This document shows positions 1,865 through 61,933 of a DNA stretch of 64,000 bases, piece after piece. Made by a program: the position numbers and the translations under genes. This DNA comes from Hamiltosporidium tvaerminnensis FI-OER-3-3 (lineage: Eukaryota; Fungi; Microsporidia): positions 124,001-188,000 of the forward strand of contig CM061255.1 of NCBI GenBank assembly GCA_022605425.2. The letters run 5' to 3'. The notes beneath the pieces were generated by a model. It worked only from the letters and a program-made list of their open reading frames with translations, did no database searches and was not told the DNA's origin. Positions within the stretch are counted from its first letter, which is position 1. Each line of letters begins with the position of its first letter.

Positions 1865-3372
1865 TTAGTATGATTGTTATTATAACCACCATCATTATCA
1901 TTATTATAACCATTATCCTTACTATTGTCAACACCCTTATTATTGTTATCTCTTGGATTACCGTTAGAATCTATATCTACTGTGTTATATTCTAAATCTA
2001 CTGTCTCTGTTATAAAATTATAATTATTTATATCTGTATTATAATTAAAACCCTTATAATTATTAGAGAATTCAAAATAATTATTTACTTGGGAATAACA
2101 GGTGTTAATGTATATATGGTTAGAATTAGAGGGTGTGTCAATAACACCCTTATAATCATTAGAGGATATGAAAATATTACTGTAGGTGTTATTTACAGGG
2201 GGAATTGAAAAATTACTTTTATTTTCTAAGGTTTGGAAATAAAGGTGTTGTTTTATAATAAAGTGTTTAACAGTAGAAAGATCTGAGATAAGGAGGGTGT
2301 TAATTAAAGTATTGTTATTTAAAGGGGTATTAGTATCTGTACTAATGGTTAAAGGGGTATTAGTATCAGTACTAATAGTCAAAGAGGTGCTATTACTAGT
2401 AGTATTACTAGTACTATTGGTTAAAGGGGTGTTATTACTAGTACTATTAGTTAAAGGGGTGTTACTAAGTAACTCTTTAACGTTTGTTTCTACTTCTTTA
2501 TCTATAAGGGTGTTAATACTGAGAGACTGTAAATAAAGGGTGTTAATACCAGGTGACTTGTTTAAAATACAATTAATTCGGTGTAAAAGAGTATCAATGT
2601 ATAAAGAAGGGTAGTTAGTAAGATAAGAGGTGTAATTTATATTATAATGTTCACATATATACATATAAAGGTCTAAAGCTTGTTTTATGTTAAAAGGAAT
2701 GAATTGTTGAAGAAGAAGAAGAATACCTGTTATTACTTCATTTTGACTGTTAGAATTGTTTATGCAATTATTTAGGGTTAAGGTAGGGTTAGTATTATCT
2801 AGATTGTTAACACCCTTATAATTATTATCTAATACTTCTTTGTTTATGCATTCATCTGCGATAGGATTGTCTAGATTATTGACACCCTCATAGTTATTAT
2901 CTAATATTTCTTTGTTTATGCAATTATTTAGGGTTGGGGTAGGGTTAGGGACCGGTTTATGTTCTATTATTTCTTTGTTTATGCATTCCTCTAAGTTAGT
3001 CTCTCTTTCTTTATAATTAACACCCTTTAATATATCCTTATTACTTGTATTAATAATGTACTTATTTAAAGGGGTGTAATGGTTAGTCCATCGTAAAAGA
3101 TTAAGAGTTTCTATATCTGTATGTTGGGGTGTTAAATACTGTAATATCTTAAAGAGTTCATTAACAGCATGAATGCCGTATGTGTTAACATTACAGAAAG
3201 GGTGTTGTAATAACAATGGTACATATTCTGTAAGAAAGAGTTTTGTCCCGTTTTCTTTTAAGTACTGTTTTATACGTTCGTATAGTTGTAGTAAATAAGG
3301 GTCCGGAGTTGAGGATGAGAGGTTGGCTATTAAAACGTTTAGTGGGTGGTTTTGTGGTGGAGGCTGTTGCAT
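1807..3372 (-). CDS. 5' part of a large hypothetical protein with Asn-rich low-complexity inserts; appears to continue in another frame
   Basis: 521-aa ORF with ATG preceded by CCCC (3385-3388). Its last ~18 codons (TTLLILITTIILILLIT) look out of frame, and a second frame opens at about 1864. Confidence 0.75.
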   Translation of the reverse strand: MQQPPPQNHPLNVLIANLSSSTPDPYLLQLYERIKQYLKENGTKLFLTEYVPLLLQHPFCNVNTYGIHAVNELFKILQYLTPQHTDIETLNLLRWTNHYTPLNKYIINTSNKDILKGVNYKERETNLEECINKEIIEHKPVPNPTPTLNNCINKEILDNNYEGVNNLDNPIADECINKEVLDNNYKGVNNLDNTNPTLTLNNCINNSNSQNEVITGILLLLQQFIPFNIKQALDLYMYICEHYNINYTSYLTNYPSLYIDTLLHRINCILNKSPGINTLYLQSLSINTLIDKEVETNVKELLSNTPLTNSTSNNTPLTNSTSNTTSNSTSLTISTDTNTPLTISTDTNTPLNNNTLINTLLISDLSTVKHFIIKQHLYFQTLENKSNFSIPPVNNTYSNIFISSNDYKGVIDTPSNSNHIYINTCYSQVNNYFEFSNNYKGFNYNTDINNYNFITETVDLEYNTVDIDSNGNPRDNNNKGVDNSKDNGYNNDNDGGYNNNHTNHTTLLILITTIILILLIT

Positions 3373-3409
3373 CTTCTTTTTTTAGGGGTGTTGTTATTTT
3401 TAGTTATAA

Positions 3410-3800
3410 ATTTAAGGGGTGTTAAATTGTACGAATAGGATACATATAGATAAGAGGGTGTTAAATAAGGGATAATAGTATTGGTGGAATAGAGGGTGTT
3501 AAATAAGGGATAATGGTATTGGTTGATAAGAGGGTGTTAAATAAGTTATATGTGTATGATGGATAAGAGGGTGTTAAATAAGGGACATCGTTATAAGTAT
3601 CGTAAAGGGGTGTTAAATAAGGTATATTTATATTAGTATCGTAAAGGGGTGTTAAATATGTGATATGTGTATGATGGATAAGAGGGTGTTAAATAAGGGA
3701 TATTGGTATTAGTATCCTAAAGGGTGCTATTAGTTTCTCTTATTACAAGATTTAAAGGGTGTTAGTTCTAATAAATAACTATAAAGTTAAAGGGGTGTTA
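3410..3800. repeat. Intergenic tandem repeat (GATAAGAGGGTGTTAAATAAGG-type units) between divergent genes
   Basis: About 10 imperfect copies of GGGTGTTAAATA lie between the 3372(-) and 3855(+) start codons. Confidence 0.85.
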
Positions 3801-3844
3801 TCTTAAGCATCCCTTATTTCATTTTTTTTATTTTTTTTTCTGAT

Positions 3845-10749: not shown

Positions 10750-13700
10750 ACCAGGAATTTTTGGTAGGTATTCCAGGTTTCTAATCACTTCAACTACAGA
10801 TATAATTTCGCATACGATAAATTCGAACTTTAATTCAGATAAATACCATAATATCGCCAAAATGTCAGTTTGGGTAACAACAGACTCTTCGTTTTTAAAT
10901 ATTTTTAAAATCATGGTCGAATCTATTTTTTGATCGCGAAGTCTGGGTGTGAAGATAATATGCCATATTGAGCCGGAAGGACGCAATGATGGCTGTTATA
11001 CTAGAATTTTGAAAAACCAAACCAAAATATCTACTCACTATATATTCTTTAATAGCCTAGACTGTAAAGAAATCAAATAACATATTTTTGAAACCTTTAA
11101 ATGTAAATAGAATGCAATAAAATTGCATTCATCTAAAATATCAAAAAAGTTTAAATCCAAAAAAAATTATCGGAAAGAATCGAGAAAGGGTTAGAAAAAG
11201 CCAAATTTGGATTAAATGAAACACTACCGACTTGAATATAACTCACCGTTTGTATTATACTTCTTTCAAAATATATTTAGATTTTTGTTCGGGAAAAAAT
11301 TGTAAGAATATCTTTATGTTTTTATTACAAACATTATAATTTTTAAAAGATTTGTAACAATAAATACCTTTCAATCATATGAGTATATGCATATATAAAT
11401 TAAATCTATTATAAATTAAAAAGCAAAGAAATTTTATTGTTTAAATCTGCCGCTGATGAATCGACTCCATAGTAGCAAATATATTTATTTTAAAAAATAT
11501 CAAATATTTTGAAAACAGTGGCACGTGTTATATTGTTTTCATGAAATTAACGCAATTCTAGGTTTATCATAAGAAAGTACAACTCAGCACTCCATAGGCC
11601 CCCCTGCCATACCTACGTCCTGAAGCCCTTCATCTATCAGGTTTGTAAATTATTTAATGAGTGAGCCAATTAACTGGTGTTTGTTAATTTCTGTTGCATG
11701 GAGTGTAATCGCAGGTCGAAACCTAACTTAATCCTTTGTAGAATATGCAGCATTCCCAATTACTTTACACATTCCGAACTTAATTAACTACTAGCTAAGA
11801 TATATCTCGTAAATTAACATGCTGCTTGTTTAGCCGCTAATACTATACCTCATTTATAATTTCTACTTGGATTTAAAAGACTTTGTTTTTATATCTCTTA
11901 GCATCTAAGTGCTCTAACTAGAATAAGAGAAATTAGGCTTACATGTTTCTAAATAACAATTAGTTAAAGGTTTGGCAAGAGCGGCAATGCAATTTCGTAA
12001 AAAACTCAAATTATACCCGAGAAAAATTACAGCCATTAAGTATACTTCCTCCTTCAAACAACCTCCTATAGACTTCAAAAGCATGGTTTATTTTTATTCA
12101 CATTGAAAGTTCAAAACATATCTCAAACATATATTTCACTTTCTCATTGTCAAGCAAATGGTATTTTATGTGGTTATTTACAGTTCACTCCTTATCCTTA
12201 ATAGTTCTAGTAGTTATCTTTTTTACGGGTGATACTATAGATAATTATGATATTCAAATATTTTTTTACTAAAAATAAACTTAAAAGAATAATTTCAAAC
12301 TGAGATAAATATTAAACTTTTCTTAACATCGAGTCAGTTACACGATGTTTTAGATTTTCAAACCAAAAAATTTAAACCGTAGGATTTAGCGATAAATGAA
12401 GCGGTAATATTTTAGGGTGCAAAGATTGTAATCTTCAAATAATTTTAGACAATAGTATTCTTAAGGTCATTTCAGATTATTGGTGATATATATAATGCGC
12501 AAATTCAATAGGCGATCTGCATAAATTTTTATTCCCATTTATTTTATACAGAAATAAAAAGATATTATACTAAATAAAAGAATGCAATCTATAGGTACAT
12601 CTAACAAAAAAAACACGTTCATTTACAACATTTTGTCAAATCAAAAGGTTTTTTTATCGAAGCAGCCTACACTTTGGTTGGAATTTTGATTTTTATAGCT
12701 TTTTTTACAGCACCGGTATTGAGCAATTTACATTTAAGCCGCATATAGATTATAATCTTGGCTCTAATATCTATTTAACATTCTGTCGTAGCCTCTCTCG
12801 AGGCACCCAGATAAAATGTATCTTTGATAAAGGCAGGCTCTATCATTCGAATTAAAGGTTTTTTTAACATGTCTAACAAAATAGTTGTTTTGATCAACGA
12901 AATATTTATTAAATTTAATATTCCAATTCTTCGTTTTCCTTTCTTCCACCATTAAGGTTTTAATAAAATAAAATTTTATATTTTATAAGGGAATTCAATA
13001 ACTTGTAATTGTGTAGTAGAATACTACACATTCTTTTGGCGAATCTACAGAAGAGAAATTTCATCTGCTGAAATAAACTTTCTATTACATACTGTAAATT
13101 AGTTCTAGTTTGAGGGTGGATAAATAATTTCATGATTTGTGCATAATTGTAATAGATTTGATATGTGATTCCAAGAACAAATCGCATGATATTTGCCCAA
13201 TTTCAATCTCTACCAATATCTGAGACTAAAAGTGGTACCATTTTATTTTTCTTAAAGACATGTTAGTTGTAATCCTAACTTATAAGCATTTTCTGCTTAT
13301 ATTTTTTGTTAATGTTCCCTGTTTTTAGCTTACCAGATTTTTTTTCGAATCGAACTTTACTGAGGAATCATACTCTTCTGCTATTCGTTATTCGCGACCT
13401 GTTACTTTTGCTATCAAAAGATTCTAATAGATTCATTTTTAACTATTGATACAGAAATAAAAACTCGGCTTAAATAGCGAAGTTAACGCTTGAGACAACC
13501 CGACAAGAAAGAATTCTTTATTCTATTGACTAATTATGCTACTGGGTGTTTATAGACTACCTTTTTCTGTAGTTATAAATTATTTCCATCCTTTATATTA
13601 CTTAATGTTATCTTTGCAACATATATAATGCAGAAATTTTGTTGTAAAAAAATATTTTAGGGCATCCTTGAACTTTGTTCCATGTATGGCTTCATAGAAA

Positions 13701-48099: not shown

Positions 48100-49245
48100 A
48101 ATAAATTTCTGGGTTAAAATAATTTTACGATATTTATGCGATTTCTTCTACCTCTTTTACCACTACAGTTTCTTCTTCCCAAATCCGACTCTTCATTAAT
48201 ATTTATCGTCGGTTACTCTAATACGTTTCCGTTTTTTGAAATAAGTATTCTATTATTTTTTGTTTTTAAATTTTTAGCACCATCTTCTTCTCGTATCGCT
48301 TGCTTTAAAGTAGGTGTTGGTTTCTCATGCATCCCTACTCTCATAATAACACCCATTGACGTTCTCTCTCAGTGTTTTTCGTCAGTTGGTTCTGACTCAA
48401 GTCATCTTCGTAGATCAAATGAAATTCTTTCGATCGTCTTCTCAAGTACTATAGATTGGATGCATGCCTCTACATTCATGGGTTTCGTAGTCTTCTAGGT
48501 GTGACTTATGATGTTTTTCAGATACCATTCCAGATCAGAATATAGAGATTATCTCAATACCACACTTATAAAAAAGACCCAACTCATTGGCTAGCAGGTC
48601 ATACTTCCTAAGTTTTTCAGTTTCAACTATTTGAAGTAAATCTTGGGAAGTGATTCCTACTTCAATGAGTGTTATCTTATTCTTCTTCTTATCTAAAATA
48701 AATATGTCGGGTCTGTTATTCCGAATTATGACATCAGTTTTTATTCCGGTGTCCACTTTTATCTCTGCATACTCATTATCAAGAATTTCTTGAACTGAGT
48801 GCCTTATAATTCGTTTTGAGGCCTTAAACTTACATTTATTTAGGAGAAGTAAATGTAGACATCTAACCACTTCATTATGCCGTCTGGTGTAGTCATGTCC
48901 TAGCATTTTTTCACGTCGAATTGCTAGATGATCCACAGTCTTACCAAATTTATTACAATATTGACACACATCATCTGCTCCCCAGAATACATTTCTATCC
49001 TGGATATAACAAACCACTGCTTAATCACGTGACTGATCTTTCTTTTTTTTAGCCATATATAAGAATCACTGACACTTACAAGCTCATTTTTCTTTGCATT
49101 ATATAACTTTGAATCGAGTTTTCGTTTTTCTATTTCGTTATATAGTTTTACAAGTTGAGCTTCTTCTAAATTTCTTAATGACTTTTTCTACCAACCTGTA
49201 CTTTACTTTTAAGAAGCCTTTTATTGGTGCAAGATGAGTTGTGTC
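48100..49245 (-). mobile_element. 5'-truncated R4/Dong-like non-LTR retrotransposon (CCHC finger plus restriction-like endonuclease)
   Basis: ORF 48535-49017 contains CQYC...TVDHL, RRHNEVV, NRPDIFI, LIEVGI and EKLRKYDLLANEL, followed by an acidic tail ending VVKEVEEIA* and a short 3' UTR TTTTAACCCAGAAATTTATT. Confidence 0.9.
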
Positions 49246-49799: not shown

Positions 49800-51182
49800 T
49801 TATTCTTCTTTAAAAATATTCTTTACTTCTTTCTTTCCTTTAAACTTTACTTTTGTCATAAAAAAATACAAAAAAAAACCTGCCACAATTCCAAAGAACA
49901 TTAAAATATAAAAATAAAAAGTACCTTTTTCTTTTTGCCACGGCACAGGCACATTCATTCCCCAAAGACTTGCTACTGCCTGACACGGTAAAAATATAAA
50001 AGTGACCTGTGTAAACCTTTTCATAACCTTATTCATATCATTTCCTTGTTTAGACTGTTCCATATTAACCAAAGCAAGAAATAAATCTTGACACCTCTCA
50101 AGCACAATATTGTATTCCTTTGCTTGTTTTTCCTGTCGGTTAAAATCCTTGAGACAGTGCAAAATATGCGGACTCACTTTTTTATCTACCCGTTTGTTAT
50201 ACCGAGTGGAAATAGAAGATAAAATAAGCATTTTGGGTTTTATAAATTTACGCAGCGAATATATTTTATTCACCACCTCAAAATTTCTCCGAAGTAAGTT
50301 TTCTATCTCCAAATTTAAATTACTAGAAAGTGTCTGAATATCCACCACCTCAGGTCCAATAGTATCTATAATATGTTTAATATCCTGTAAAAACTCAACA
50401 ATGATCGAAAAAAACACCCAATCAGGCACCATCACAGTATGACAGCATATCAAAGATAAAAAATTTGTAATATCAGAAATACCGCCCCATTTCTTATCAT
50501 GAGTAGTTATAACAAAATCTTTAAACAATAAAATGTTAAAATCGATATCTTCATTGGAATATAAATTTCCTTCAGATAAAAGACGTAAAGAAATAAAACT
50601 GTAATTTTTAAAAATTTCTATTTTTTCTTCTGTGTTTCTCTCCCGAATATCCATCAGTGTTATATCGTTTATGTTAAAATACAAACCTAGAATTTGTAAA
50701 TCGTGCTCAGATGGATTAAAAATATTCAACCAGTAATGCTTTAAAACAGTTAAATTCAATTCTTCAAATCTGTCAAATAAACAGTCAGATTGTATTAAAG
50801 AAGTAGATTTGCTAAATAAAATGTATTTACTTTCACCTAAATTTCTGTATCTAGAAAAGTCGTAGACCGAAGTTCGTTTATCCTCCGTATGACTCAAATT
50901 ATTTCCCTCCACATTTCCATCCTCCATACTCATAGAAATACGTTTATCTTCTGTATGATCTACATTGTTTACAACCTCATTTCCATCCAAATGTCCACCC
51001 ACATTTCCATCCTCTATACTCATAGAAATACGTTTCTCTTCACTTATATTCTTCATCTCCACTACTTCTTCTAGTCCTGCTTCTATATTTAACAACATTC
51101 TGTATATATTTTGATTTTCTCTTCCTTTCTTCATTTTCCTATAAATAGTTATTATTTCCATTATCGTGTTAGTACATTCCAT
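49800..51182 (-). CDS. CorA-family Mg2+ transporter (Alr1/Mnr2-like)
   Basis: C-terminal MNKVMKRFT..TFIFLP...LWGMNVPVPW plus a second TM helix; GMN signature; GGGGG upstream of the ATG. Confidence 0.93.
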   Translation of the reverse strand: MECTNTIMEIITIYRKMKKGRENQNIYRMLLNIEAGLEEVVEMKNISEEKRISMSIEDGNVGGHLDGNEVVNNVDHTEDKRISMSMEDGNVEGNNLSHTEDKRTSVYDFSRYRNLGESKYILFSKSTSLIQSDCLFDRFEELNLTVLKHYWLNIFNPSEHDLQILGLYFNINDITLMDIRERNTEEKIEIFKNYSFISLRLLSEGNLYSNEDIDFNILLFKDFVITTHDKKWGGISDITNFLSLICCHTVMVPDWVFFSIIVEFLQDIKHIIDTIGPEVVDIQTLSSNLNLEIENLLRRNFEVVNKIYSLRKFIKPKMLILSSISTRYNKRVDKKVSPHILHCLKDFNRQEKQAKEYNIVLERCQDLFLALVNMEQSKQGNDMNKVMKRFTQVTFIFLPCQAVASLWGMNVPVPWQKEKGTFYFYILMFFGIVAGFFLYFFMTKVKFKGKKEVKNIFKEE

Positions 51183-51569
51183 ATTTTACCCCCTACAATG
51201 TGGTTTCTATTTTAAAGGAGTAAAATACCAGTAAAATTGTAGATTTAACAGTAAATCGCTGATAAAATATTAAATGTTAGATTTTAACAGTAAATATCAA
51301 ATGTTAGATTTTAAGAGTAAATATTAATTAGTAAATATTATTGATTAGATTGTAAGTAATAGATTCAAAGAGTATTAAAGAGTGTCTAATACTAAAGATT
51401 AAAAGAGTGTTAATTACTAAATATTTAAGAGTAGATTTAATGGTGTTAAATATTGGATTTTAAATAGTAATTTAGAGTAAATTAGTGATAAAATATTAAA
51501 TGTTAGAATTAAAAGGGGTAATAATAATGATTAGAAGATTTAAAGTAATTTAAATGAAAGTATTTATTG

Positions 51570-51925
51570 ATAACAGGGGTTATTAATAAAGGGGTGTTAT
51601 TTATAAGAGTATGTTAAAGGGTATTAATTATATATATGTTAAGTAACAGGGTGTTAATTACATACATAGGTATTAACAGGGTGTTAATAATATACATTGG
51701 TACTAAAAGGGTGATAATTATAACTAATATAATTAATAGTGTGTTAATAAACTATCTAATATATAAGGGGGTGCTAATTATAACTAATACATAATAGGGT
51801 GTTAATAACCTATCTAATACATAAGAGGGTGTTAATAAACTATCTAATACATAACAGGGTGTTAATAAATTATCTAATACATAAAGGGTTTTAATTATAC
51901 TTACTGTTATTAACACCCTTATAAT
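51570..51925. repeat. AGGGTGTTAAT-rich intergenic tandem repeat (~30-bp units)
   Basis: About 10 imperfect units between AOX and CorA. Confidence 0.85.
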
Positions 51926-51956
51926 TACATCTTTTATCATTAACACACTCCAACTC

Positions 51957-53042
51957 TTACTTCAATGAGAATGCCACTTCATTGGCAAATGCATGATTAG
52001 TGTCCCTATGTGCTGCCTCATCTGCACGTACAGCTCGTACAACATCAATAAGACGTGCTTTATGGGGTAAATTCCAATATAAAATAGCCCTTTTAGGTGC
52101 AAAAACATTTTCAATATTTTTATTTTTAATTTCCTCTTCAAACATGTCATAAGACCTAATAGCTTCTTCTTCCAAATATCCAACAAACCGATGTGCAGAT
52201 TTTGGAAATAAAAAATAAAAAATAAAATAAAAACTAAAAAAAAATATTTGTCCAGTATAAATAACAAGAGTGTCTAAAAAAGAAGGTTTGGAAATTTCTA
52301 GAAAAGTTAGAAGATGTTGTCTTTCATTTTCTGCCTCAAGAAGTAGTTTTTGTATGGATGTACCATTATCTACAGTTCTTCGTAAAGAATACAGGTGTCT
52401 GAACAAACCACCCACCATTCCTGGAATAGAAGCTACTGTTTCTAAAACTATGGCTCGATGAACATATCGCTTTCTGAAGTATAAATCTGCAAGAAATCTA
52501 AATCCTTTTACTAGAGAATAAGATATGTAATCTGAGTATCTCTGTGGTTTGAAATGAAAATCTTTTTTATAATTTATTTCTTTTAGCTGAGTAAGCGTTA
52601 TTTTCTTTTTAAATTCTTCTCTGACTGGTTGTGGGAAATAAAACCTACGTTGTGAGATAAAGGGGTGTTGATTATTAGAAGAGTTGTATATGTTATTAAA
52701 GGGGTGTTGATTATTAGAAGAGTTGTATAGGTCTGTAAAGGGGTGTTGTTTATATGATGTAATATCTTGCTTATTAAAAGGGTGTTGTTTATATGATGAA
52801 TTGTATAGGTGTGTAAAGGGGTGTTGTTTATATGATGTAATATCCTCGTTATTAGAGGGGTGTTGTTTATGTAAATATTCTCTGTTATTAATAGGTGTTA
52901 TTTCTAAGTATCTTCTTGGTGCAATATAACCCTTTAATATACTATTATCATTATTACTGTGAATAACACCATTTGTTATATCTTTAAGGCTTTCTTTATT
53001 AATAAAAGGGTTTTTAGTTGTTAATAGATTTTTTAAAAGCAT
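51957..53042 (-). CDS. AOX: Alternative oxidase (mitosomal), with a repeat-expanded N-terminus
   Basis: Di-iron motifs LETVA, EAENERQHL, VGYLEEEA and VRADEAAH; CCC immediately upstream of the ATG (53043-53045). Confidence 0.97.
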   Translation of the reverse strand: MLLKNLLTTKNPFINKESLKDITNGVIHSNNDNSILKGYIAPRRYLEITPINNREYLHKQHPSNNEDITSYKQHPFTHLYNSSYKQHPFNKQDITSYKQHPFTDLYNSSNNQHPFNNIYNSSNNQHPFISQRRFYFPQPVREEFKKKITLTQLKEINYKKDFHFKPQRYSDYISYSLVKGFRFLADLYFRKRYVHRAIVLETVASIPGMVGGLFRHLYSLRRTVDNGTSIQKLLLEAENERQHLLTFLEISKPSFLDTLVIYTGQIFFFSFYFIFYFLFPKSAHRFVGYLEEEAIRSYDMFEEEIKNKNIENVFAPKRAILYWNLPHKARLIDVVRAVRADEAAHRDTNHAFANEVAFSLK

Positions 53043-53159
53043 GGGTTTGTTTTTAAAAGTTTATTTTAAATAAGTTTTGATTAAATAGAATATTAAAGGT
53101 AAATTAAGGGAATTTAATAGAAAGGTAATTCAGGATTGTAATAGAAGGGTAATAGTGTG

Positions 53160-53305
53160 ATGTAATAAGGGAAGATTAATGGAAGGATAATAGAAGGATA
53201 ATAGAGGAATAATAGAGAAATAATAGAGAAATAATAGAAGAATAAAAGAAGAATAAAAGAATATAATAGAGAAATAATAGAAGAATAATAGAGGAATAAT
53301 ATAAG
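53160..53305. repeat. AATAGA(G/A)-type microsatellite-like tract upstream of AOX
   Basis: Tandem ~11-bp AATAGAGAAAT/AATAGAAGAAT units. Confidence 0.8.
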
Positions 53306-53379
53306 GGTTATAAATTACGGTTTTTTAATACAGAATTATAATCTTAAAAACCAATAAAATAAATACTTTACTTACTACA

Positions 53380-53570
53380 TACTAACACCCCTTTAAATAT
53401 ACGTACTTAACCCTTTAACTATAACTACTAATAATAACACCCCTTTAAATATACATACTAACACCCCTTTAACTATAACTACTCATAATAACACCTTTAA
53501 ATATAAATCATAACTCTAACACCCCTTTTTAGCAACACATATACATATAAATAACACCCCTTTAACTATC
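53380..53570. repeat. TAACACCCCTTTAA repeats downstream of enolase
   Basis: About 7 imperfect units. Confidence 0.8.
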
Positions 53571-53571
53571 T

Positions 53572-54858
53572 TTACTTACTTTTCTTTTTAAGTGACTCTT
53601 CAATTCTCAACAACTGATTGTACTTACATGTTCTTTCTCCTCTATTAGGTGCTCCGGCTTTAATATACTCTGCACCGATACCTACACTGAAGTCAGAAAT
53701 AAACGTATCTTCTGTCTCCCCACTTCTATGAGAAACCATAATTTTCATATTGTTTTGTCTTGCGATCTGTACAGCTTTAAGAGTCTGAGTTACAGTTCCT
53801 ATCTGATTAGGCTTAACTAGAAGTGTGTTACACATTTTATTTTGTGCGGCTTTTTCTACCAAATCAGGGTTTGTAACTGTCAGGTCGTCTGCTACTATCT
53901 GTATTGAAGAGCCTACTTGGTTTGTAAATGATATCCATGAGGATGTGTCTGTTTCAGCGAATGGATCTTCTAAGGAATAAATTAATGGGTATTTTTTAAG
54001 TATTTGGTGGTAATATTGTTGAAGTTCTGTTCCTGACAAAGAAACTTTTTTATTGGAATTTTGTGTTTTTTGGTAAATTGTGTATTTTTCTTGGCTGTAG
54101 AATTCGTTAGCAGCGCAATCTAAGGCGATTTTCATGTTTTGTAGGTTTGACTGGGAATAGGCTGTCATGATAAGGTCAAGGGCGTCTTCTAGTGTTTCTA
54201 CGGGTGGTACGAAACCACCTTCGTCGCCTACGTTGGTGGAATTATTGCCGTATTTTGTTGAAATGACACTTTTAAGTGACTCATAAAATTTAACTCCGCT
54301 TTCTAAATTTTTAGAAAATTCTGGTTCAAAAAAGGAAACCATGATTTCCTGAAATGGAAAATTTGTGCCTGCGTGGGATCCACCGTTTAATACGTTGAAG
54401 TGAGGAAATGGCATTTTATTTTTGTACAAAGCCATTCTCGAAATATATTCTCTAAGACTCAAATTTAAAGAAACAGCACCTGCTCTACAGAAAGATAAAG
54501 ACAGCGGTAAAACAATATTTGCTCCAATTCTTGACATATTAGGAGTTCCATCTAAATGTATAAGAAAATTGTCAATTTTTGACTGATCGTGTATTTCTGT
54601 CTCGTTTAAATCACCAATTCGTGGAATTACAATATTTTTTAAATTAAATATTGCCTTCTTCACTGATTTTCCGTTATATTCATCAGAATTCTTGTCTAAA
54701 ATAACTTTTGCTTCTTTTTTACCTGTAGATGCTCCTGACGGACACGAAGATCTAAATACACCAAACGATGTGTGTAGGTCTATTTCCGTGGTAGGTGTAC
54801 CTCGACTGCTAAGTATTTGTCTACATTTTATTTTTTGATAACATTCTTGTATTTTCAT
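53572..54858 (-). CDS. ENO: Enolase
   Basis: PSGASTG, NGGSHAG, QE, VGDEGGF, LDCAA, SLEDPF, VADDL, LLVKPNQIG, SHRSGETED, IKAGAP and KYNQLLRIEE are all intact; CCCC upstream (54863-54866). Confidence 0.98.
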   Translation of the reverse strand: MKIQECYQKIKCRQILSSRGTPTTEIDLHTSFGVFRSSCPSGASTGKKEAKVILDKNSDEYNGKSVKKAIFNLKNIVIPRIGDLNETEIHDQSKIDNFLIHLDGTPNMSRIGANIVLPLSLSFCRAGAVSLNLSLREYISRMALYKNKMPFPHFNVLNGGSHAGTNFPFQEIMVSFFEPEFSKNLESGVKFYESLKSVISTKYGNNSTNVGDEGGFVPPVETLEDALDLIMTAYSQSNLQNMKIALDCAANEFYSQEKYTIYQKTQNSNKKVSLSGTELQQYYHQILKKYPLIYSLEDPFAETDTSSWISFTNQVGSSIQIVADDLTVTNPDLVEKAAQNKMCNTLLVKPNQIGTVTQTLKAVQIARQNNMKIMVSHRSGETEDTFISDFSVGIGAEYIKAGAPNRGERTCKYNQLLRIEESLKKKSK

Positions 54859-56614: not shown

Positions 56615-57265
56615 TTATTTTTCATACCTTAATGTATCATGGTTTACATTGATAGCATGATTCCAGTGCACTATAGTACTTTTACCTATCAAAACCTCAA
56701 TGCTTTTCATCAAAGATATATATGGTCAAGTAAATGAGCGAAGCATTACCCAGAAACGGTCTAAATTGGTTGTATTAAGTGTGATTGCATGCCAATCCCT
56801 CTAGACTTCTCTAAGAGCAGCAACATTCCCACATACTGCATATATTCTGAACTACAGAGATTTCCAGCTGTGATATATATTGGCGAGTTACATGAGATCT
56901 AACACGATGATGCATGTCATGCTATCAGATTACCTGCAACTTAACCTTTCCGGTTTTTTAGTGTATGTTCCTGTAACTTCCGAGAAAATAAATCTTTTAA
57001 CCGGGTAGCCAGTGCTTTGACATGGCAATTACATCAAGGTCTGCTAATAATTACAATCTACTTACATAAAAAACTATAAAGTGCGTTATAAGAAAAAGTT
57101 CCATTATATTGCAGGTCATATCTTACTGTTACAAATGTTGATTGCAGTCGAATTCAATCTAGTCTTTATTCCACCAAAGAACAAAAAGAAAGATTTTTCA
57201 CACATATTTCGTCTTATAATTGCCAAGAAGAAACTTTTACAAATGTTTATGTTCTCTATCTTCAT
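56615..57265 (-). mobile_element. 730-nt structured non-coding repeat, highly diverged copy
   Basis: The reverse complement retains CTTGGCAAT, TAGTTTTTTATGTAA, GTAATTGCCATGT, GCAGGTAA and TTCAGA..GTGGGAATGTTGC. Confidence 0.7.
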
Positions 57266-60104: not shown

Positions 60105-60307
60105 GGAACTAATTTATTTTCTTAAATATTCTAATAAATAATTAATTACCTTAATTATTTCCAATAAATAATTCATTTTCTTAAATTTTATTAGAAATAA
60201 TTAATTTTCTTAAATTTTATTAGAAATAATTAATTTTCTTAAATATTATTAAAACTAATTAATTTTCTTAAATTTTATAAGAAATAATTCATTTTCTTAA
60301 ATTTTAT
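60105..60307. repeat. ~28-bp AT-rich minisatellite abutting the 730-nt element
   Basis: Tandem AAATAATTAATTTTCTTAAATTTTATTAG units. Confidence 0.8.
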
Positions 60308-61040
60308 GTGGAGGGAGGATAACCACATAAAAAACTTTCTGCTTGGCAATGAGTGTGCGAAACTGGTGTGAGGTCATTGTTTGGATTTTTGGTGGGAATA
60401 AAACCACACTACATCTTCGGTTGTTCAATGAGAGTTGTTATGAGGAGGAGAGGTCTAAGAAACGGAGAAACTTTTTCTACAAATTTATTTGTAGTTTTTT
60501 ATGTAACCAGATTGCAGACCGCAGCTGAACATGTAGGTAATTGCCATGTAAAAGCATGGAAACCTAGCCTTGCTCACTCGGGTTAGAAGACTTAGCGCCT
60601 GGGAGATATAAAAATAAAACCCATTAAAAGCCGGGAGAGCTAAGTAGCAGGTTATACCTGTTGGTATGACATTGCACTGTCTAGGTGGACCCCATGTAAA
60701 TCTCTGAAATATATCTTAGCTAGAAGTTTATTGGGTTCAGAAAGTGTAGATTAAGTGGGAATGCTGCATAGTCTTGGGGGAGGCAAGGAGGGCTTCGGCC
60801 TTCGATCACACTCCATGCAACGACATTAACGAACTCCGGGCAACTGTCTCCCTCGCCTAGTAATTAGGTTCTACACACCTGGTAAATGAAAGGCTTTGGG
60901 ACATAGGTATCGCAGGGGTTACCGATGGAGTGTTGGGGTAGCAGTCATTTATGTTAAACCTAGAACTGCGTTAATGTCATAAAAACAAATATAACACTTG
61001 CCACTGGTTTAAAAAAAGATGTGATACTTTTAAATAAAAT
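60308..61040 (+). mobile_element. 730-nt structured non-coding repeat, young copy
   Basis: Near-identical to 45895-46626, with the same GTGGAGGGAGG start and GATGTGATACTTTTAAATAAAAT end. Confidence 0.9.
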
Positions 61041-61406
61041 AATATTTCTTATATTATTTCTTATATTATTTACAGTTTTATTTATTAATTTTTTTTCTGT
61101 TTTTTATAGATTAAGTTTTATTTATTATATTATATGTTTATAATATTCTTAGTTCTTTAATTATTAAATTATTTTTCTGTTTTTTATAGATTAGGTTTTA
61201 TTTCTTATATTTTATGTTTATAATTTTAATATTAAATTTACGGTTCTTATTTTAAGAATTAATTTTAATATACATATTTAGAAAGATAATGTAGTATTCA
61301 TATCTTTCTATTATAAGTCAACAAAGAAATATATTTTTAATTTATTAGAAATTAATTATTCATCAAATTAAATCAAGAGATTATTCCATCATTTAAATAG
61401 AATTAT

Positions 61407-61475
61407 TATTTAAATAAATTCTAGGTTAAAATATTTTTACAATTTTTATATGTTTTCTTCTACCTCTTTAACCAC
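61407..61475 (-). mobile_element. 69-bp insertion of the extreme 3' end of the R4/Dong-like element, with 15-bp TSD
   Basis: Matches 48100-48165 (GGTTAAAAT...TTCTTCTACCTCTTT.ACCACT); perfect direct repeat TTTAAATAGAATTAT at 61392-61406 and 61476-61490. Confidence 0.8.
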
Positions 61476-61642
61476 TTTAAATAGAATTATAAATATCAAT
61501 TAAAATTATTTATTGATTCGAAATTTTTGTTCTTCAATTGAAAAAAGTTAACAAATTATTTCAAATTTATATTTTTTTTTATTGAATTTAATTGCTTATT
61601 TGGTGTAATTATATTATAATTGAAGAGAATATTTACATTTAA

Positions 61643-61933
61643 TAAAATTCTGAGTTAAAATATTTTTTACTGTTTTTTTATATATTTTCTTTCACCTCTT
61701 AAATCATTATTTAATAAAATTATTGGTTAAAATATTTTTTACTGTTTTTATATATTTTCTTTCACCTTTCAAATGATAACTAAATTTATTTAATAAAATT
61801 CTGAGTTAAAATATTTTTTACTGTTTTTTTTATATTTTCTTTCACCTTTCAAATGATTTATTTAATAAAATTATTGGTTAAAATATTTTTTTTACCATTT
61901 TTATATATTTTCTTTCAGCTCTTTTAATTTAAA
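61643..61933 (-). mobile_element. Four head-to-tail ~70-bp R4/Dong 3'-end units inside one 17-bp TSD
   Basis: Units AATAAAATT(CTGA/ATTG)GTTAAAATATTTTTT..TATATTTTCTTTCA(C/G)CT x4; direct repeat AGAATATTTACATTTAA at 61626-61642 and 61934-61950. Confidence 0.75.

Follow-up and report, generated by a model that had tools for sequence, protein, structure and literature searches.

What kind of element is the non-coding repeat of about 730 nucleotides that occupies positions 60308-61040 (+) of a 64,000-nucleotide stretch of the Hamiltosporidium tvaerminnensis genome (the whole of which is called the window here), and by which route has it spread? The initial annotation of the window proposed a non-autonomous retroposon, or a retrocopied large RNA, whose fold is under selection, and it reported six copies. 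All six members of this family, designated family A, were recovered by blastn and nhmmer at the reported places, one of them with a reduced extent: the old copy at 56696-57253 (−; 66% identity) covers only model positions 9-591, its 3' part being lost or decayed. The focal copy is full length and is 96-97% identical to other young copies. A second young full-length copy is found at 45895-46626 (+), with 94% identity to the focal one; it carries the 14-bp target-site duplication (TSD) TTTTTTTTATTTAA, in agreement with the duplication of about 15 bp first noticed for one copy. An old full-length copy, 72% identical to the focal copy and with a G+C content down to 35%, is located at 39257-39963 (+), and two other old copies with 32% G+C lie on the opposite strand at 11491-12177 (65-75% identity) and 29816-30514 (67-76% identity). 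Mapping of four LINE families in the window did not reveal the reported nesting of one copy in an older LINE. No recognisable TSD was detected for the focal copy (60308-61040). A tandem repeat of about 29 nt (attaattttcttaaattttattagaaata-like) is present directly upstream of it, at 60200-60307. Elsewhere in the window, three consecutive intron-less genes coding for a CorA-like Mg2+ transporter, an alternative oxidase and an enolase occupy 49800-54858 (−).

The copies of the window align end to end between a common 5' GTGGAGGGAGG and a common 3' TTTTAAATAAA followed by 1-2 nt, as had been claimed. In 30 young copies taken with their flanks, this start and this finish with its 1-2 additional bases were invariant and poly(A) was absent. 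The 3'-terminal motif TTTAAATAAA plus 1-2 nt is situated at 61029-61040 (+) in the focal copy, again without poly(A), and the same TTAAATAAA ends a LINE of putative restriction-like endonuclease (RLE) type described below. The consensus of family A measures 727 nt with 42% G+C, in a genome of about 26% G+C. Its longest open reading frame in any frame is 77 aa and each frame contains 10-18 stops, which confirms the lack of a conserved ORF; no tRNA signal was detected by ARAGORN, no Rfam family was matched by the element, and it could still not be assigned to a known family. Rfam searches of the window, the element and its 5' head, at the gathering thresholds and at E values up to 10, returned only a chance-level bacterial DUF805 motif. 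This sub-threshold match (16 bits, E = 0.91; L016:1496-1556) lies in the first 55 nt of the element, where it spans the 5' hairpin and the AUGAGU block, and it is most likely fortuitous.

The abundance of the family was estimated in the whole assembly (21,638,905 bases, 17 contigs, about 26% G+C). The search yielded at least 1408 first-look family A candidates, and the best 40 among these at least 1408 were all full length and 95-97% identical to the focal copy. With up to 2 mismatches, 473 exact 5' ends and 644 exact 3' ends were counted, evenly split between the strands. Young family A copies alone represent about 0.47 Mb, or some 2% of the genome. When the contig depths of a DNA run from this organism were summed, the element exceeded its flanks about a thousand-fold, a ratio that is not to be read as a copy number. 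The genome also holds a full-length microsporidian small-subunit rRNA (Rfam RF02542, 1208 bits).

Young family A copies contain 42% G+C and old copies 32-37%. The old copies simply decay towards the A+T richness of the genome, and their best genomic matches are members of the young family (70-73%). As a result of this drop, A/T blocks look 'conserved' and double changes from G-C to A-U arise. The young copies are mosaic: 29 haplotypes were distinguished at 26 shared sites in 32 copies, all four gametes were observed for 76% of the site pairs, and linkage decreases from r2 = 0.26 at less than 25 nt to 0.05-0.07 beyond 150 nt. Gene conversion, or switching of template between RNAs, may account for this mosaicism. 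Family A 3' ends were also encountered in pairs, 114-118 nt apart on one strand (C1:100383/100497 and C1:1294307/1294425). These pairs are short tandem tail fragments resembling the LINE tail concatemer of the window, in which four LINE 3'-tail units follow one another head-to-tail at 61631-61924 (−).

The mode of insertion was deduced from the junctions. Clear TSDs, with a mode of 12-15 bp and each of a different sequence, flank 26 of 32 young copies. In about 60% of the young copies (L002-L030), 1-2 extra bases separate the TSD from the first G of the element, and among about 18 junctions of this type, 10 have a G next to the element, G accounting for about 13% of the genome; this extra G could be due to cap-copying or to non-templated addition. 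Furthermore, the first 22 nt are duplicated ahead of the element in three copies (C7:805899, C11:388474 and C15:971334). The duplicated segment, made of the GTGG...CCAC hairpin plus ATA, is joined through 0-1 junction bases that differ among the copies, which looks like recurrent template jumping at the 5' end of the RNA. Finally, a 5'-truncated family A copy with a 15-bp TSD exists. Together, the TSDs, the extra junction bases, the 22-nt duplications and the 5' truncation indicate target-primed reverse transcription with occasional template jumps, and the same signatures rule out LTRs and DNA transposons.

A solo LTR is thus extremely improbable, as are other repeat classes, MITEs or satellite units for example. 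The length of the element is in the LTR range and the window copies at 39255 and 45895 are on the same strand, 6 kb apart, but their identities to the focal copy are 72% and 94%, hence they are not a pair, and the ORFs between them gave no Pfam match. The TSDs of LTR elements measure 4-6 bp and flank a pair, whereas the young copies individually possess separate duplications of 12-15 bp (26/32). As already noted in the initial annotation, family A shows neither TG..CA ends nor terminal inverted repeats, and no copies were found as paired LTRs around gag/pol with 4-6-bp TSDs. The proposal of a non-autonomous retroposon is upheld by the non-coding nature of the element, its LINE-sized TSDs and its hundreds of near-identical dispersed copies. 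Very probably, family A is a non-autonomous non-LTR retroposon that behaves like a SINE, is long, lacks a recognised small-RNA head and is driven by a LINE.

A source of reverse transcriptase is abundant in the genome: a search with Pfam RVT_1 gave at least 150 matches from 466 candidates, many of them in intact ORFs of about 1256 aa. The dominant LINE is 3.8 kb long with a single ORF of about 1256 aa; its copies are 99% identical, its TSDs measure 11-14 bp and its 3' end is TTAAATAAAAAT. According to Pfam, the ORF contains a central reverse transcriptase and no APE domain, and in the PDB the reverse transcriptase matches L1 ORF2 and R2 proteins. In the C-terminus, read from the translation, a CCHC knuckle precedes an RPD...E motif, and this CCHC plus PD..E arrangement reads as the layout of a restriction-like endonuclease. 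Only a few bases separate the start of the dominant LINE from its ATG, so that a 5' UTR is practically missing, yet 149 intact 5' ends were counted (L043-L045, L050; C12, C17, C14).

The only similarity between this LINE and family A is TTAAATAAA at the extreme 3' end, over about 9-12 nt. As a free local alignment, the resemblance of the two tails is not significant (p = 0.15); the motif occurs in the window at 1.9e-4 per position and, given this rarity, its presence at both extreme 3' termini is unlikely to arise by chance. Judging from these termini, the dominant LINE is on balance the probable partner of family A: its enzyme would copy the family A RNA, and reverse transcription probably begins at the shared terminal TTAAATAAA. 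No chimeric SINE-LINE insertion was found, and adjacent family A and LINE copies have separate TSDs. Family A 3' ends were observed 1-68 nt upstream of LINE 5' ends of the same orientation at C2:1280100, C2:1294320, C1:1629950 and C1:1666100 (L060, L063, L065, L067). Those located 19-68 nt before the LINE were examined as candidate template-jump chimeras and rejected, the separate TSDs at the junctions revealing independent neighbouring insertions; such close neighbours may reflect a preferred target.

Other LINE families of the genome include an APE-type LINE with an (ATTTT)n tail, and the sampling of LINEs with their UTRs covered a part of these families. The APE-type LINE (L048, L032, L033) encodes an ORF1 of 457 aa and an ORF2 of 1195 aa, and a 70-nt repeat with 84% identity is present in its 3' region. 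A 15-nt match between its tail and family A was discarded as a chance match, this LINE ending in (ATTTT)n and having nothing in common with family A.

Non-autonomous partners of RLE LINEs are often deletion derivatives. Family A could likewise have arisen from an autonomous LINE by internal deletion, so as to consist of the 5' and 3' ends of that LINE, and the partial coverage of the LINE families sampled with UTRs counts in favour of this origin. However, the family A profile (nhmmer) matched nothing in 20 LINE loci of four families except separate heads of a second retroposon family, family B. The main LINE, whose sequence begins at the ATG, has no 5' similarity to family A, and the listed family A copies are not systematically beside reverse transcriptase ORFs. 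Moreover, the presence of one head on two bodies with different tails, described below, fits a SINE-type module. An origin by internal deletion of a LINE is therefore improbable, and the SINE-like retroposon remains the preferred reading.

The initial annotation had contrasted the full-length insertion of this element with the 5'-truncated LINEs beside it and had deduced from this a defined 5' end, produced by an own promoter or by self-processing. The contrast is real, since only 3' fragments of LINEs occur in the window, among them a solo 3' tail made of the last 78 nt of the RLE-type LINE at 61402-61478 (−) and a 5'-truncated fragment at 48092-49240 (−) which corresponds to LINE positions 2656-3812 (86%). 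In the genome, 149 5' ends and 585 3' ends were counted for the LINE, i.e. 25% of full-length copies, versus 473 and 644 for family A, i.e. 73%. A constant stop rate fitted to family A amounts to 4.3e-4 per nt over 727 nt and predicts about 20% of full-length copies for a 3.8-kb template, to be compared with the 25% observed. As one per-base truncation rate fits both elements, length alone accounts for the contrast and a special 5' mechanism need not be invoked.

The fold of the RNA bears on another explanation, in which family A would represent a structured non-coding RNA of large size, or retrocopies of it, with a fold kept by selection and possibly a self-processing 5' end. The helices named in the initial annotation were found at their coordinates, and perfect complements of 12 and 10 bp are present in the element, but overlaps or crossings occur among the long stems. 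A near-consensus copy has a minimum free energy (MFE) of -209.1 kcal/mol. The sense strand folds with z = -1.78 against 20 shuffles and, for the consensus, z = -1.38 against 150 dinucleotide shuffles, 8.7% of which fold as well as the consensus; the antisense strand gives z = -0.61. This difference between the strands is a point for a structured RNA, but no 120-nt stretch was detected at z < -2 in local windows. Similarly, the 42% G+C of the element in a genome of 26% G+C would be compatible with a constrained RNA, but the LINE is as GC-rich as family A. An excess of complementary words (k = 9: 8 versus 1.25) was considered and dismissed, as it disappeared without the A/T runs and was equalled or exceeded in LINE coding segments. 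The qualification 'heavily structured' was consequently not retained, helix counts and folding energy being no higher than in shuffles or in LINE coding DNA.

The comparison of copies did not reveal selection on the fold either. RNAalifold, applied to nine copies, gave a consensus energy of -20.8 kcal/mol in which the covariation term (+1.64) is a penalty. The 216 MFE pairs were canonical in five old copies no more often than same-base pseudo-pairs (p = 0.05-0.74). At 64 sites where at least 3 old copies agree against the young family, 1 compensatory pair was observed for 1.1 expected and 23 single-sided breaks for 23.4 expected, the power of these tests of selection on the fold being limited as the old copies are decayed singletons. 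Thus, with z values of -1.4 to -1.8, a positive covariation term and a retention of pairs in old copies equal to that of the pseudo-pair null, the claim of a selected fold was given up. Two observations point in the other direction. Predicted pairs are broken by 6 of 26 shared young variants and by 50 of 118 private ones (odds ratio 0.41, p = 0.078), and the GGC-UUCG-GCC hairpin is changed to GGU-UUCG-ACC in two old copies, with one compensatory closing pair; but in this A+T-biased genome no mutations are commoner than double changes from G-C to A-U. The bias of the shared variants and the UUCG closing pair are weak hints, insufficient for a claim of structured RNA. No ribozyme or other Rfam family was matched. 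With regard to an HDV-like self-cleaving ribozyme at the 5' end, as in R2 or L1Tc, which would form a nested double pseudoknot from +1, the one partner recognised by eye for bases 1-4 is at 16-19, too close for a P1-P2-P3 arrangement. A structured RNA kept by selection is quite improbable as the nature of the repeat, and family A offers no evidence of a novel structured RNA.

The retroposon family possesses a 5' head module of about 105-109 nt, located in the focal copy at 60308-60416 (+) and composed of the blocks GGATAACCACAT, TTGGCAATGA, ATTGTTTG and GTGGGA..AACCACAC. Profile matches restricted to positions 1-109 led to family B, an element of about 225 nt (e.g. L015:430-654(−); also L069-L075) of which one copy, with the same head and a different body, lies at 47501-47757 (+), its 3' limit being approximate. 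A first-look search gave 582 candidates for family B; compared with the query, itself an old copy, the members of this family show 79-84% identity. Family B combines the same head of about 105 nt with its own body, an AAGT-repeat tail and its own TSDs of 13 bp; no LINE with an AAGT-repeat tail was present among the sampled loci. By eye, the heads of families A and B are about 85% alike and conserved as sequence blocks, and RNAalifold predicted no shared pairs in the heads.

The origin of this head was searched among the usual small RNAs. A 5S origin, suggested by short words which seemed common by eye, was rejected as the head does not align with the 5S rRNA of the genome itself, and a tRNA origin was rejected by ARAGORN. 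In Rfam, the head matched no snRNA, 7SL or ribozyme model, and no recognised promoter boxes were detected in it. A pattern search for the head in metagenomes gave five loci of 41-51% GC without a profile match, considered as chance occurrences. The occurrence of one head on two bodies and two tails speaks for a SINE-type modularity. The head would then putatively supply transcription, through an internal promoter, and not recognition by the LINE, a step proposed with less confidence than the others; an own promoter in this conserved head is possible. The internal T5-T6 runs disfavour pol III. Two raw RNA runs contained no reads of the organism, none matching 6 kb of this locus, and a possible RNA run gave a single 189-nt contig. 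A bolder view, in which the head is a new SINE 5' module that is not derived from tRNA, 5S, 7SL or snRNA and that gives the element its own transcription start or RNA processing, with parts of the body constrained as RNA, is rather unlikely. If it were true, the head might be a pol II-type internal promoter, of which the frequent extra G at the 5' junctions is a possible hint.

Family A resembles canonical SINEs by its modular head, body and tail, its non-coding nature, its LINE-sized TSDs, its burst-like amplification and its mosaic subfamilies. It differs from them by a head that matches neither tRNA, nor the 7SL models of Rfam, nor the 5S rRNA of the genome, by T5-T6 runs that fit pol III poorly and by a minimal LINE-derived tail. 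Canonical SINEs are roughly 100-600 nt long, and the consensus of 727 nt is outside this range. Family A is also comparable to R2 SIDEs, RIME/ingi and NARTc/L1Tc, which are non-autonomous and LINE-riding, some of them on LINEs with a restriction-like endonuclease, but it shares only its last 10 nt or so with any LINE sampled. EhLINE1 of Entamoeba histolytica carries a restriction-like endonuclease (R4 clade), and EhSINE1, its non-autonomous partner, is the closest described analogue. Like the EhSINE1/EhLINE1 couple, family A is a long and abundant non-coding retroposon of a small A+T-rich parasite genome, with conserved ends, TSDs, no tRNA-type head and a probable non-LTR partner. EhSINE1 is 451-684 bp long, non-coding and abundant, with TSDs of about 9-24 bp; about 70 bp of its 3' end are common to EhLINE1 and its transcripts are polyadenylated (PMC2996970). 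Family A, compared with it by description only, has a tail overlap of about 9-12 nt, no poly(A) and no internal repeats of 26-27 nt. In internally deleted LINE derivatives, the similarity to the parent LINE comprises both extremities, 5' and 3', or extends over the entire element (PMC2996970). Family A is an ordinary and very successful retroposon of an already-known kind, whose unexplained head is the one feature of interest.

The genome report of H. tvaerminnensis, a parasite of Daphnia magna, describes 21.64 Mb in 17 contigs with 39.56% of interspersed repeats, 25.45% of the genome being unclassified 'other' repeats (PMC10542269). The word SINE is absent from this report (PMC10542269) and from two surveys of microsporidian transposable elements (PMC7313128, PMC4202319), and a literature search found no paper pairing Hamiltosporidium with SINEs. 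Families A and B and the active LINE of putative RLE type explain part of this unclassified fraction, with family A amounting to about 2% of the genome through its young copies alone and to more when the old ones are included. These results reveal very recent retroposition in a "large-genome" microsporidian; they are of use for annotation and, in the Daphnia-parasite system, as a source of insertion-polymorphism markers, and they add a second case, among protists, of a long SINE that lacks a small-RNA head.
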